Positions 2,993-7,891 of a stretch of DNA of 64,000 nt are shown here, one piece after another (positions within the stretch are counted from its first letter, which is position 1; each line of letters opens with the position of its first letter). Below the pieces are notes generated by a model. The model searched no databases, was not told the origin of the DNA, and saw only the letters and a program-made list of their open reading frames with translations. Source of the DNA: Chlorokybus atmophyticus (lineage: Eukaryota > Plantae > Mesostigma and Chlorokybus algae); the NCBI GenBank assembly GCA_009103225.1, contig RHPI01003369.1:1037490-1101489 (forward strand), in the 5' to 3' direction. A program made the position numbers and the translations under genes.

Positions 2993-3131
2993 CAGTGCAG
3001 AGTTTTGTTGCAAACCTTCATTGCAACGGTTCCCATTGCGTTATGTGACAATGAGCTAGGCCCAATCCAAACAATGCCCAACCCAAGCAACCCAAGCAAT
3101 GCCCATGAACCCTGATGTTCAGTGGTACTTG

Positions 3132-5199
3132 TTATGTTATGCCAACTTTGCGCTTCTGCATCCTTGACTGCCTGAAAGTGAGACTTACTCTTCGCTCGCT
3201 CAGTACGCCTTCTTTGGAAATCGAATGTGTATAATTGTATCGGCAGTCGCTGGTCAACACCTGGCAGCAATGCCAATGAGCACTTCAATAAGCCACATGT
3301 TCTTCGTGTTTTGCATTGAAGCCTGCATGCTAATGGACAATGCCTAGCATAGCAAGGCTCACCGACAATGCTCGGCGCTGGATGTGGCAGTCTACTTCAT
3401 GTTTGGCACCCTTTTCTCGCTTGAACATGTCATGATCACATCTCCCACAGTGGCAAGAGTTGCCAAGACAGTCCCAGACAGCTGCAGACTCAACCAGGTG
3501 TTCATGATTGAGAGTCCGCTCATGAGGAACAAGATAGGATGCAACATACGCCTGCTTGTACCACGTGGACCAACCTGGCGGTCATCAACGTGGGGTGCAA
3601 GCCAATCACCACGACTACGCATGTATTCATTGGCGTTTACTTCATTGGGATAGAAGGACTCCAAGCCAGGCAGCTGCCAGAGAGGACATTGAAACCATGT
3701 GGTTACTTGCTGGAAAGGCACCACAACACAACAGTGTACTGGCCAGTTCACTGTGCAGAGCACGCACTCAAAATTAGCTTGCAAACAGCAAATGCACACC
3801 CCCACACACATGTGCATGCATGCACGCACACATTCAATGCAGTCCTGACCTCGCGAAAGCGCGCCATTATGGGTTGCAAGACATGAGGGATTTGCCGCAA
3901 TGGAGCATCGACAGTCCTGGAAACCATGCACACATTCAGTAACATGAAATGCAGCAACAGCAGTATACAGTCAGCCTCCCGGACAGAGTACATGGCCATG
4001 CTCAACAACAGCTGAACAGCAATATGTACACATGCGGTTGTTACTTACCGCTTAGTAAGACTAACAACCACACCATACGCTTTGCGTTGGTGCTGACCAT
4101 TCCAACTGCTTGACCTCCAAGGGTTGCTGCGGTCCGCATCCAGGTACTCAATAATACACTGCTCCTCCTGCCAGTAGCTGCATACAGGATCCAAGCAAAA
4201 CAATGACATAACCAAGAGAAGCTCACTAGAACCTACCTTAGGAGTAATGAAGTCCATCAGCAGACGATGCCCTTTCACATGGTGTGGGCTGCCGACAGCT
4301 GTTGTTGGCACATGCCTCCACGGGTTGCTTCTTGGATAACCAAGCTTGGGATTGACCAAAGAAGACACTTGTGTGGGTTGTGAAGTGCTGGCCTGCCTGG
4401 CCTTGCGTGAAGCATGTTCATCACTGTCAGTTGCTGGCAGCTGAGTAACTTGTGCATCCTCTTGACCAACAATTCTGTCGATCGCACTCGTGGAGTCATC
4501 CAACTCTATTTCAGTGAGAGAAGTGTTGCTGGCTGGTGCGGGGGATATCGGTGGGCAGCAGGTGTCCAAGTGTTCGTTTATGCTGGCAAGCAGCACATTG
4601 GCCTGAAAGACATAGTGCTGGTTGGCGTGGTGTAGACAACCATACTGTTTCACCACAGAAATTGATTGCAATGTTGGCGCGCAGCTTTAGTACTGCAGTT
4701 TGCGAGAGCTTGTGTGTGCGCCTCGACATGCACACCGTGCACATAATAACTGGCCCAGAAGCTGTCGTCAAGCAGCCCGCGATAATGGGGAAATGGTCAG
4801 CAGCTGCCATGACGTTACAAAATGCAATGCTGCATGCACACAGCAGCAAGTGCGGACGAATGTGTCGTAGCTGACATGCTTGTGGGCATCCAAGAAACAT
4901 AGTGTTCGCTTCACTTATGATAAGGCTGCTGCAACTTGCTGAGCAGCTGTCGCACGGCATCTTTGGCAACGCAAGCGCTGTCATCTTGCTTGTACCAGCA
5001 ATGCTGAAGCCTACAAGCATGCACGCAAGCATGGGCACACCTGGCATACAGGGCAGACCACTCGCTGCTGCTGCTGCTGCTCCTCTCCCCCGTGCAGCTG
5101 TCGCCCGGACGCATTGACAGGAAGAGCACAAGGAGAAGAAGAAGCGGAGGCGCCACTCAAGAAGCCGTCAAGCGTCCGCTGCCGCTTAAGCTTGCCCAT
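3132..5199 (-). CDS. AlkB-family Fe(II)/2OG dioxygenase, ALKBH4-like, with N-terminal PIP box and UBZ4 zinc finger; apparent frameshift near 3427
   Basis: Spliced protein: MGKLKRQRTLDGFL...VCPVCQ|ANVLLASINEHLDTC...GLESFYPNEVNANEYMRSRGDWLAPHVDDRQ|LSGTVLATL...EVDCHIQRRALS|VLTSDCRYNYTHSISKEGVLSERRVSLTFRQS. The HxD...H...RxxxTFR catalytic set is present. ATG at 5199, TAA at 3132-3134. Confidence 0.85.
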
Positions 5200-5330
5200 G
5201 AGAGCTCACACAAACCAGCTACACACAAAACACTGCTTCGCTGCACTAAGCATCTTCTGCCTGCCGTTGCTGGCAGTGTTGGTGTGAGCGTGGGCCGGCA
5301 TTGTTGGCGGCATTGTTGACGTGGGCGGCG

Positions 5331-7891
5331 ATGGCTCTGGCGGCGCGGGTGGTGGTGCTGCCCAGCGTGCAGCCCACAGCTGCTTTCGCGAGCGTTGTGG
5401 ATGGGGTGAAGGTGATGAGAAGGAAGCTGCGGCCCAATGCAGGGGCCAAGCTGGACGTGCTCAGAGTTAGGCGTCGGCGAGGGTTGCACTCTGTTGGTGC
5501 CGCTGGAGGAAAGGTTGTCGCCGTGGCTGCTGCACCGGTCGCATTGGGGTTGGAGCCCAAAGGCGTCGACATGAAAGAGGTGAGTTGGACTGCGGAGACA
5601 AACTTCTTCTTTCCGTCAGCATTGCTCGAAGCTCCACTTTGGCCTGAGGCATGCAAGAGTGATTGCCGGTCGGTGATAATGCAAGCGTGTCATGCATGCA
5701 TGCCTACAGGTGTCCTCAGGGCACCATTGCTGCGAACATACCAGTAACATGCAGACTGTTCTTTATGCCGTACAAAATGTTCGGCACATATTCCTGGCAT
5801 GCACAAGTTCAGTACTTGTTGCACACTACCATCCTGCGCAGTACTGTTTCAGGCCAAATAAACTTTGACCATTGCCAGGTTAATGTCAATGCCTCTTGCC
5901 TGTATGCGCCTTGATGATACCGACACAAGCTTGTCCATTACCAAATGTGCATACAGACAATGCCTGCACACTCCACTTGCTCGCCTTGTGGTCGACACAA
6001 ATGGAACTGTCTTAGAGCTTCAGTTAGGCAACCGCTCATGACCCTGTCTTTACTGCTCACGCGTAAGTCGAGTAGTAAATCTGAGCCCAACTCTTTCAAC
6101 TGCAGGTGATTGAAAGGCTGATACTGCAAGAAGATTTGACGGAAGACGTGTGCGAAGGTGCTCTTGCTGATCTCCTGTCGGGAGCAGACTCCACGCAGAC
6201 AGCTGCATTTCTCGTGTTGCTGAGAGCAAAAGGCGAGACGCCAGCTGAGGTGTGCAACTTAACTGGATACTACAATTCACATCTGACCAAGCACCAGCAA
6301 CGGTTGACAAGTCATTCATCTCTTTTGCGTGCTTTTGCCAGCGCAGATTGCTGGTTTGGCCCGCGCAATGCGCAAGCGATGCGTGCCGGTAGTTGCCGGG
6401 GTGGACACTCTGGACATCGTGGGCACTGGCGGGGACGGCGCCAACACCGTGAACATCTCAACTGGATCGTGTGTGCTGGCTGCCGCTTGTGGTGCGCGAG
6501 TTGCGAAGCATGGCAATCGCTCTGTGTCATCCGCCTGTGGTGCTGCAGATGTGCTGGAAGCTCTTGGCGTGGCAATTGACTTGGGACCTGAGGTACCTCT
6601 TTGACTCTTTGAAGTATTATGTTGATCTAAAGCTTCCTTACTGTTGCAATGTAGCCAAGTGCACAATGATGCATATCCAGAAGGGCTGATGGTACAACTC
6701 AAAGCATGCTTCAAGCTGTGTTAGCCATGTGTATGCTTGGTTGCTACCCACATAATGCCTTGATCTACAGGGTGTAGCACAGTGTGTGCGCGAGGTGGGT
6801 GTGGGCTTCATGTATGCTCCAAGGTATCATCCGGCGATGAAGGCTGTGCGCGCAGTCAGGAGCGCTCTTCGCGTGCGCACAGCATTCAACATTCTGGTGC
6901 GGTGTTGCGTTACGCACATCAAAAACAGGCCTGTGTTGATGCGTTTCTTATGTCTGCCTTTGTTGAACACACGAGTTGCACACCAGGGCCCCATGCTGAA
7001 TCCAGCATCAACGCCGTACTCGTTGATCGGCGTGTTCTCGCCAGAACTAGTGTCACTTGTGGCTAAGACCATGCAGCGGCTTGGAACCAAGAAGACGCTC
7101 GTTGTTCACTCGGAGGGCATTGATGAGCTTACGCCCATAAGTAAGTGTGTAGCAAGTGCTTGGAATGGCATGCTCTAGCATTGTGCACAGCAACATGAGG
7201 CAGTCGTGCTGTATGTTGTGTGGTTTTGTCCCTTCTCTCATCAAGTCTCTGTGTTGCTGCCAGGTCCTGCAGAGGTTCTGGAAGTCACACAACATTCTGT
7301 GATAAAGAAGCGTATTTCGCCACGTAAGCAGTATCATTATTCGCTTGTTTCCAGTCCTAGCAGCCACATGTACTCGTGTGTCTCACTGTTGGCCAATCGC
7401 AGAGGACCTTGGCTTGCCCACTTGCACAATTGAAGACTTGCGGGGTGGAGATGCACCCTTCAACGCTTCTATTCTTAGAGATGTGTTCGGGGGCCAGCGT
7501 GGAGCGGTGGCAGATGCTTTGGTATATGCTTACTCCAATTGGCATTAGGATGAGAGGGTACTAGGTGTTGCTCATCATGTGTGCAACAGGTGTTGAATGC
7601 GGGGGTGGCGCTCGCCGCTTGCGAGATCGCTAAGGACATTCCGGAAGGGGTTGCAATGGCGCAGGAGGTGCAGCGGTCTGGCAAGGCTGCGCAAACGTTG
7701 CAAAAGTGGGCTGTCCTGTCCACGGTAGGTTTTGATCTGGTTGTGGTCATATCGTGTTCAGGCTGCTGGGGTTGCCTGGATTTGCTTCTCAACAGCTGTT
7801 ACAGGCGAGATGCAGCTACTTGCTAACAGCTGGCATCTCTCAGGCTTTGCGGAGACAAGAAGAGGAAGCATCAGTTGCACTAGTCAGTTAA
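5331..7891 (+). CDS. trpD: Anthranilate phosphoribosyltransferase, plastid-targeted, multi-exon
   Basis: [71 protein letters not shown] motifs. Ala/Arg/Val-rich transit-peptide-like first exon. Confidence 0.96.

Follow-up and report, generated by a model that had tools for sequence, protein, structure and literature searches.

The alga Chlorokybus atmophyticus carries, in a window of 64,000 nucleotides (nt) (assembly GCA_009103225.1, contig RHPI01003369.1, positions 1,037,490 to 1,101,489 of the forward strand, numbered here from the first letter), a minus-strand gene that appears to bring together three modules: a motif resembling the PCNA-interacting protein (PIP) box, a Rad18-type UBZ4 zinc finger and an AlkB-type dioxygenase domain. 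The gene raises two questions, whether the three modules are made as one protein and what such a protein would do. An earlier note on this DNA had proposed a demethylase coupled to the replication fork. The transcripts answer the first question, for one spliced mRNA encodes all three modules. As for the second, the sequences of the family make it on balance probable that the gene belongs to a conserved AlkB subfamily, related to ALKBH4 and NMAD-1, whose members would be tethered to the fork by the PIP motif and the UBZ4 finger and would demethylate DNA.

Gene structure and the spliced transcript

The gene has seven exons, 5199..3132, which were derived from the sequence and whose borders were then matched to public contigs over 3000-5400. 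The contigs were assembled from two RNA runs, X1 and X2, and from run X3, whose contigs are unspliced and thus DNA. The start ATG lies at 5199, with an in-frame TGA three codons upstream (5208-5206). Exon 1 ends at 5041 in CAG|GT, and exon 2 starts at 4602 directly after an AG. A single spliced X1 contig of 1185 nt crosses all six introns with the GT..AG borders of the derived model (joints 5041/4602, 4237/4167, 4049/3916, 3850/3673, 3575/3481 and 3363/3260). Contigs of X2, which comes from a different study, confirm four joints, 5041/4602 among them, and the 16-letter overhang of one X2 contig is also compatible with joint 3575/3481. The joining of exon 1 to exon 2, from which the earlier note had assembled its zinc finger, is therefore seen in independent studies, and the X1 contig places exon 1 together with the AlkB exons in one mRNA.

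Because the joints are confirmed in the contigs, the N-terminal KLKRQRTLDGFL and the finger CPVCQ|ANVLLASINEHLDTC, both read by the earlier note, are genuine protein sequence. They also stand in the public JGI model P0001 (eukprot jgi/Chlat1/5962, 299 residues), which a word-based protein search identified as the same locus with identical exons 1 to 6. Exons 1-6 were analysed through P0001, and the remainder of exon 6 and exon 7 separately. Single exons and read-throughs that retain introns were too short to yield any match in Pfam or the PDB.

Exon 1 (5041..5199, minus strand, as are all exons) comprises 53 codons with the start codon, a basic N-terminus, the PIP-like motif and the first half of the finger, equal to residues 1-53 of P0001. 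It is covered by contigs of X1 (5177-5040) and X2 (5092-5040). Intron 1 (4603..5040, 438 nt, GT..AG, phase 0) interrupts the zinc finger, and its joint is present in both RNA runs. Exon 2 (4237..4602, 122 codons) holds the end of the finger, a disordered linker of about 90 residues and the start of the AlkB domain (GHRLLMDFITPK). All exons of the window are collinear with a profile of the protein family described below, and exon 1 falls on its N-terminal k-k-q-r-s-l-t-s-f-f column.

Two introns, intron 2 (4168-4236, 69 nt) and intron 5 (3482-3574, 93 nt), are multiples of three and free of stops in the exon frame, and open reading frames (ORFs) at 4045..4671 and 3392..3931 run straight across them. 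Retention of either would insert in-frame residues instead of truncating the protein. A 3948-nt contig of X3 meets exon 1 only at two 19-nt stretches, 5066-5084 and 5132-5150. These are a CAG run (QQQQQ) and a TCT-rich stretch (SSS), hence a low-complexity match and no second copy.

PIP-like motif and UBZ4 finger

The PIP-like motif is QRTLDGFL (residues 7-14, 5158..5181), read from the sequence and preceded by the basic residues KLKR. Its position 8 is Leu, and the motif therefore departs from the PIP box Q-x-x-[LIVM]-x-x-[FYW]-[FYW]. In an AlphaFold2 model, residues 1-18 with the motif are disordered (predicted local distance difference test, pLDDT, below 50), and the N-terminal 45 residues and the linker at 70-160 are predicted to be disordered as well. 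A disordered region is the usual setting of PCNA-binding short motifs. Among 77 curated, proven PCNA binders, 43% are without one of the two aromatics, and positive flanks increase the affinity for PCNA by orders of magnitude (PMC6881253). For these two reasons QRTLDGFL behind KLKR is plausible as a non-canonical PIP motif, with PCNA binding as a prediction.

The motif also recurs in relatives of the protein. QRTLDGFL aligns to an N-terminal Q-x-x-L-x-x-F-F column of the family. Over the 187 family members used for all counts of architecture, 45 have Q-x-x-[LIVM]-x-x-[FYW]-[FYWL] within the first 60 residues and outside the finger. Shuffles of the same 60 residues give 0.47 on average and at most 3, so that the enrichment is about 100-fold. 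The motif starts at residue 12 in the median. Its positions 7-8 read FF in 33, FL in 9 and YF in 3 of the 45 carriers, and the flanks of seven residues on either side carry a net charge that averages +2 and is never negative. It stands upstream of the finger in 40 of 41 members, with a median gap of 38 residues. Thus the PIP box claimed by the earlier note holds as a basic, disordered N-terminal motif that recurs in 45 of 187 relatives, and fails as a canonical box in its position 8 Leu.

The finger is split over exon 1 (CPVCQ, residues 49-53, 5041..5055) and exon 2 (ANVLLASINEHLDTC, residues 54-68, 4558..4602, with His64, Asp66 and Cys68). Residues 49-68 of P0001 follow C-x2-C-x11-H-x3-C, with C49, C52, H64 and C68 as ligands. 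The top solved-structure matches of the finger are the UBZ of RAD18 (2mre, E 0.0046; 5vf0, E 0.0076) and the UBZ of WRNIP1 (3vhs, E 0.025), and the RAD18 UBZ is also the best solved-structure match of the whole P0001 (E 0.0046). Among Pfam finger families, zf-WRNIP1_ubi and zf_UBZ rank first, both below threshold. The AlphaFold2 model, built on a 40-sequence alignment, gives a beta-beta-alpha finger (strands 46-48 and 55-57, helix 58-68, pLDDT 85-95). This superposes on the WRNIP1 UBZ 3vhs with a root-mean-square deviation (rmsd) of 0.8 A at 54% identity and on the ubiquitin-bound RAD18 UBZ 5vf0 with 0.5 A at 50% identity. The helix SINEHLDTC aligns with HINKHLDSC of RAD18 and HINSHLDRC of WRNIP1, so that I-N-x-H-L-D-x-C, including the Asp, is shared. 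The helix Asp is required for ubiquitin binding in RAD18 and WRNIP1. The Rad18-type UBZ4 split by an intron, as first read from the letters, is thus borne out by the RAD18 match, the beta-beta-alpha model and the intron 1 joint in X1 and X2, and the finger is predicted to bind ubiquitin.

Both elements recur in relatives far above the shuffle expectation and the finger also matches the RAD18 UBZ, so the combination of PIP-like motif and finger is beyond chance. A finger of the form C-x2-C-x(6-16)-H-x(3,4)-C upstream of the HxD is found in 114 of the 187 members. The Asp is kept in only about one third of the family fingers, most of which read H-A-x-x-C, and reader specificity may differ between sub-clades. 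A few H-A-x-x-C fingers score as Pfam zf-C2HC_2 or Sgf11. Several members carry two tandem fingers (among the relatives P0026, P0056, P0108, P0125, P0122 and P0064).

These counts bear on a rather unlikely alternative, in which recruitment is directed by ubiquitin and independent of PCNA. The finger would then bring the dioxygenase to ubiquitinated chromatin or to lysine 63 (K63) chains at alkylation damage, and the N-terminal Q-x-x-L-x-x-F-F/L would be a short linear motif of another kind, for nuclear import or REV1 interaction for example. Under this alternative one understands that members with the finger outnumber those with the PIP pattern (114 to 45 among 187) and that ferns retain the finger and a basic N-terminus and not the aromatic pair. 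The REV1-interacting region (RIR) and MLH1-interacting protein (MIP) motifs are examples of promiscuous FF-type motifs, and this promiscuity has been described (PMC6881253). However, the position of the Q-x-x-L-x-x-F-F pattern, at the very N-terminus and with disorder and positive flanks around it, is classic for a PIP box, the roughly 100-fold enrichment over shuffles has to be accounted for, and PIP together with UBZ is the known logic of SPRTN, Pol eta/kappa and SNM1A. Targeting through both elements is the reading that we carry forward.

AlkB domain, family and substrate

The catalytic domain begins in exon 2 and continues in exon 3 (4049..4167), which holds the block EEQ..LD..PW...NG...K.YG of the AlkB N-terminal part and scores 39.7 bits against the family profile, its joints being seen in the contigs. 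Exon 4 (3850..3916), whose joints are present in X1 and X2, is collinear with profile positions 196-215. Exon 5 (3575..3673, 46.5 bits) contains NE.NA.EY and the iron-binding H-x-D within the signature HVDDRQ. The ligands are His (3592-3590) and Asp (3586-3584), H265 and D267, which are invariant family columns. Exons 5 and 7 between them encode the HxD, the distal His and the Arg residues, each of which falls on an invariant column.

A family profile built from 40 relatives was run against the PDB. Its best match, over the whole domain, is NMAD-1, the C. elegans orthologue of ALKBH4 (E 4e-29, 105 bits), followed by ALKBH8 (E 1e-22, 84 bits), ALKBH7 (E 5e-12, 49 bits), ALKBH5 (E 6e-7, 32 bits), S. 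pombe Ofd2 (E 4e-6, 30 bits) and ALKBH6 (E 2e-5, 27 bits), with ALKBH3 and ALKBH2 lower (ALKBH2 E 0.003). The Pfam family PF13532 matches 42 of 45 relatives at E<=0.01, and the full-length relative P0068 scores 55 bits. The truncated P0001 reaches 20-22.9 bits, below the gathering threshold of 31.2 bits. A model of P0068, with pLDDT above 94 in the domain, matches NMAD-1 with Z 20.3 and rmsd 2.4 A over 186 residues. The matches of this model to NMAD-1, ALKBH6, 2, 5, 3, 8 and AlkB span Z 17.5-20.3 over 157-186 residues. Since the other AlkB members lie within 1-3 Z units of NMAD-1, the clade cannot be separated by structure, and the comparison of models is a confirmation of the AlkB-type double-stranded beta-helix fold, not of the clade. 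A Foldseek search with the truncated P0001 model gave no match at E<=0.001, with NMAD-1 ranked first.

The earlier note had compared the domain to ALKBH4. NMAD-1 is indeed the closest solved relative, best in the profile search and at the top of the structure searches with both the P0001 and the P0068 models, and ALKBH4/NMAD-1 and the family share the layout D-F-I-x-x-E-E, P-W, HxD, R-Y-x-x-x-H, R-R-x-x-x-T-x-R-E. The family nevertheless has a signature of its own and appears to form a separate clade. All of the 150 best relatives have H-x-D-D-R-Q-L-S or a close variant, none of them looks like a canonical ALKBH4, and H-x-D-[DN]-R-x-[LMIVT]-[STNA] is present in 152 of 166 family sequences. The H-x-D-D-x-W-x-W-G of NMAD-1 occurs in 0 of the same 166. 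To our knowledge H-x-D-D-x-W-x-W-G is general in ALKBH4, which gives a lead.

The surroundings of the domain differ as well. An N-terminal zinc module defines the ALKBH4 clade (PMC4738411). It comprises residues 8-20 in NMAD-1A, and a 28-residue C-terminal domain is needed for NMAD-1A activity (PMC10815869). Thus NMAD-1 has a compact zinc module beside the domain and a 28-residue C-terminal domain, whereas the family has the PIP motif and UBZ4 finger on a long disordered arm and is without that C-terminal domain. The ALKBH4 zinc module was not found. The only Cys/His cluster is the UBZ4 finger about 100 disordered residues upstream, and this matches UBZ domains, not NMAD-1. The word-based protein search, with the read-through, P0001 and alignment A1, returned nothing beyond the model of the locus itself or 15 close members of the family, and no ALKBH4 or outgroups. 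Our reading is of a distinct subfamily with ALKBH4 as nearest characterised relative, ALKBH4-related by profile; the tree that was built covers members of the family.

The relation to NMAD-1 raises the question of the substrate. Demethylation of actin by NMAD-1 has been reported (PMC10278977), and the activity of the enzyme on N6-methyladenine (6mA) in DNA was described as weak (PMC10815869). The protein might accordingly be a protein demethylase or hydroxylase and not a DNA enzyme, acting on methylated PCNA-associated or ubiquitinated proteins as ALKBH4 and NMAD-1 act on actin. We regard this as improbable: the targeting modules are typical of DNA-transaction factors, the fold also matches DNA- or RNA-bound AlkB, ALKBH2, 3 and 5 at Z 18-19, and the family has neither the C-terminal domain nor the N-terminal zinc module of NMAD-1. 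RNA (tRNA or mRNA), the substrate of ALKBH8 and ALKBH5, is highly improbable here. ALKBH8 is the second-best profile match (1e-22) and shows the highest identity in the structural alignment (30-31%), but the family is without the RRM or methyltransferase module of ALKBH8, and PIP and UBZ4 are targeting devices of DNA replication and repair. DNA remains the substrate that we favour.

A full scan over 1.84 billion representatives yielded 444 relatives at E<=1e-3, of which 246 reach E<=1e-10. In Klebsormidium nitens (GAQ85491.1), QPRLTAFL stands at residue 14 and the finger near residue 177. The fern members of Ceratopteris, Adiantum, Pteridium and Psilotum keep the finger and a basic MAPKRQR... 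start and have lost the aromatic pair. Trebouxia is a family member, and the diatom Attheya has the motif and two fingers. The fern sequences P0151, P0003, P0176 and P0007 have a variant finger, C-x2-C-x11-H-x4-C (HLDWDC), and the part of the PIP motif that is hydrophobic and aromatic is gone from them. The in-family tree places Chlorokybus with Klebsormidium and the ferns (support 94/96), and a separate clade, of 26 rows and including the diatom (support 98/90), shows the full architecture as well. The tree pattern fits vertical descent and an old origin of the layout. Judged by its sequences, the family is widespread, conserved and uncharacterised, with motif, finger and domain in a fixed order.

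The earlier note knew of no such architecture in land plants. The ferns, with finger and AlkB domain, contradict an absence there, and the wider architecture search that it called for finds finger and AlkB together in 114 of 187 relatives. Members named by their source are labelled only "hypothetical protein", "AlkB-like domain-containing protein" or with the JGI AlkB label. Standard annotation shows only an AlkB-like domain because Pfam misses the finger at its threshold and the PIP box is not a domain. No published description of an AlkB or ALKBH protein fused to UBZ, UBZ4, Rad18 or a PIP box was found, and the papers on AlkB evolution that were consulted are silent on it. The literature found on these terms consists of reviews of PCNA readers, papers on the AlkB homologue 2 PCNA-interacting motif (APIM) and surveys of plant m6A gene families. 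Each of the three modules is already known, and it is their fusion to an AlkB enzyme for which no description was found.

Two alleles in exon 6 and the neighbouring gene

Exon 6 (3363..3481) is 119 nt long in the genome and lies between two phase-0 borders, which shifts the frame. Its first part is in frame (LSGTVLATLATVGDVIMT) and the rest is shifted, reading ...GDVIMT and later a premature TAG (3394-3392), and because the frame reaches this stop the JGI protein ends at residue 299. The cause is two extra bases at 3427..3428. The X1 transcript is without them (120 record letters over 122 genome letters), and its frame continues into ...FKREKGAKHEVDCHIQRRALS and exon 7. The two letters are carried by the assembly, the X2 RNA contigs and the X3 DNA contigs, and are missing from X1 only. 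The earlier note had overlooked this insertion, and the ORF end that it gave, 3132, is not reached in the genome as sequenced. An alternative, frame-restoring donor 4 nt downstream of exon 5 is rejected, for X1 and X2 use 3575/3481 and the resulting peptide misfits the family. X1 further differs by T>C (plus strand) at 3164, on the same allele as the intact frame; the change turns AGG (Arg) into GGG (Gly) in the C-terminal tail, which is not conserved. The differences between X1 and the genome therefore indicate two alleles of about 99.9% identity.

Exon 7 (3132..3260) is intact, although out of frame in the genome, and ends in TAA (3134-3132). It has the top score of all exons against the family profile (50.9 bits) and 50-63% identity to the C-termini of relatives. 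Its R-Y-x-Y-T-H-S-I, with the distal iron-binding His at 3227-3225, and its R-R-V-S-L-T-F-R, with the Arg for 2-oxoglutarate (2OG) binding, are invariant or nearly invariant columns. The full triad H-x-D...H and the 2OG-binding Arg are thus in one frame only in X1 and not in the genome. The product of the genome allele should include motif and finger but end after two thirds of the dioxygenase, with an incomplete active site. With its stop at 299 ahead of the third iron ligand and of the arginines that bind 2OG, the genome allele should be catalytically dead, yet retain the PIP motif and finger. The 2-nt polymorphism offers a natural pair in Chlorokybus, truncated versus intact.

It could be asked whether the gene is merely decaying, with the frameshifted allele as the normal state of the sequenced lineage and a locus without function there. 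This fits the presence of the insertion in the assembly, the X3 DNA contigs and the X2 RNA contigs, the terminal branch of Chlorokybus, the longest among streptophytes (1.52), and the score of P0001 below the Pfam cut-off. Decay is nonetheless unlikely in our view, given the intact frame in X1 at 99.9% identity, the undamaged exon 7 past the shift, still the best exon against the family profile, and an mRNA that is produced and fully spliced. The same three observations suggest that the lesion is recent: it looks very recent or strain-specific.

On the plus strand a divergent neighbour (window 5278-6579) starts about 100 bp from the ATG of the AlkB gene. Its ORF 5301-5747 has a transit-peptide-like start rich in Ala, Val and Arg, and its ORF 6106-6579 matches Glycos_trans_3N (PF02885, E 1.5e-9), a domain known from anthranilate phosphoribosyltransferase. 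Position 5278 is the end of a separate X1 contig of 1486 nt. A short bidirectional promoter may serve both genes.

Predicted role at the fork and known recruitment systems

PCNA binding, ubiquitin binding, the substrate and the context of the fork are what we infer from this architecture. The protein would consist of a disordered N-terminal arm with a basic PIP-type motif followed by the UBZ4 finger, a flexible linker and the Fe(II)/2-oxoglutarate dioxygenase domain. The PIP motif would dock in the hydrophobic pocket of PCNA, and the finger would recognise ubiquitin that is attached to PCNA or to a protein next to it at the fork. The AlkB domain, so tethered, could remove N-methyl groups by oxidation where DNA is unpaired at a stalled or passing fork. 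Candidate substrates are alkylation lesions such as 1-methyladenine (1mA) and 3-methylcytosine (3mC), or else 6mA. NMAD-1 has a preference for unpaired DNA in bubbles or bulges (PMC10815869). It is linked to replication and to repair, and both are impaired when it is lost (PMC6638966). The most economical model would be an oxidative demethylase that is tethered to the fork and works on single-stranded or unpaired DNA. The targeting to ubiquitinated PCNA at forks suggested in the earlier note is reasonable in so far as motif, finger and domain are conserved in that order across a large family, and it is a deduction from sequence.

Several points weigh against this model. Binding and activity are predictions for all family members, and ALKBH4 and NMAD-1 also demethylate actin (PMC10278977 for NMAD-1), so that a protein substrate is possible. 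Most relatives have the H-A-x-x-C finger without the Asp that UBZ4 uses for ubiquitin, and Pfam hardly recognises the finger. With Leu at position 8 the PIP box is non-canonical, and ferns are without the aromatic pair. Structural scores do not separate ALKBH4 from ALKBH6, 2 or 5. The allele of the sequenced genome is truncated, and the long Chlorokybus branch in the in-family tree could mean relaxed constraint.

A broader proposal is more tentative: that an ancient, unrecognised PIP-UBZ4-AlkB subfamily is hard-wired to ubiquitinated PCNA, as a direct-reversal DNA demethylase for replication-coupled removal of lesions or 6mA. Such a subfamily, equally tentatively, would span streptophyte algae, ferns, chlorophytes and diatoms and use the recruitment code of translesion polymerases and SPRTN. 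It would have escaped notice because both the motif and the finger stay below the thresholds of standard domain annotation. The architecture is invisible to Pfam-threshold annotation, which leaves only the labels "AlkB-like domain-containing" or "hypothetical". These compact proteins of 300-400 residues are testable, and bear on whether ALKBH4-like enzymes act on DNA and on the place, with respect to the fork, at which 6mA or alkyl lesions are removed.

Two couplings of AlkB direct reversal are known, to replication via APIM (ALKBH2) and to ubiquitin via the separate ASCC2 (ALKBH3). Human ALKBH2 is likewise an AlkB-family repair enzyme that places an N-terminal short linear motif on PCNA and couples dealkylation to replication (PMC2742182). 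It uses APIM, not a PIP box, has no module that reads ubiquitin and falls in another AlkB clade (profile E 0.003). ALKBH3-ASCC, reportedly described by Brickner et al. in Nature in 2017, is said to bring an AlkB dealkylase to alkylation damage in a ubiquitin-dependent way. In that complex ubiquitin is read by a separate subunit, through the CUE domain of ASCC2, whereas in the Chlorokybus family the reader is fused in cis as a UBZ4 finger.

The common logic is that of SPRTN, SNM1A, Pol eta/kappa, WRNIP1 and RAD18, factors with PIP and/or UBZ that act at the ubiquitinated PCNA of stalled forks. PIP together with UBZ brings SPRTN, Pol eta/kappa and SNM1A to ubiquitinated PCNA (PMC3714560, PMC9240642, PMC11199599), and the UBZ of RAD18 and WRNIP1 is 46-54% identical to the Chlorokybus finger. 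The cargo of these factors is a protease, nuclease, polymerase, ATPase or E3 ligase; here it is a predicted oxidative demethylase. If the reading is right, several eukaryotic lineages apply the PIP and UBZ code of damage tolerance to oxidative demethylation, with both devices fused to the enzyme itself.

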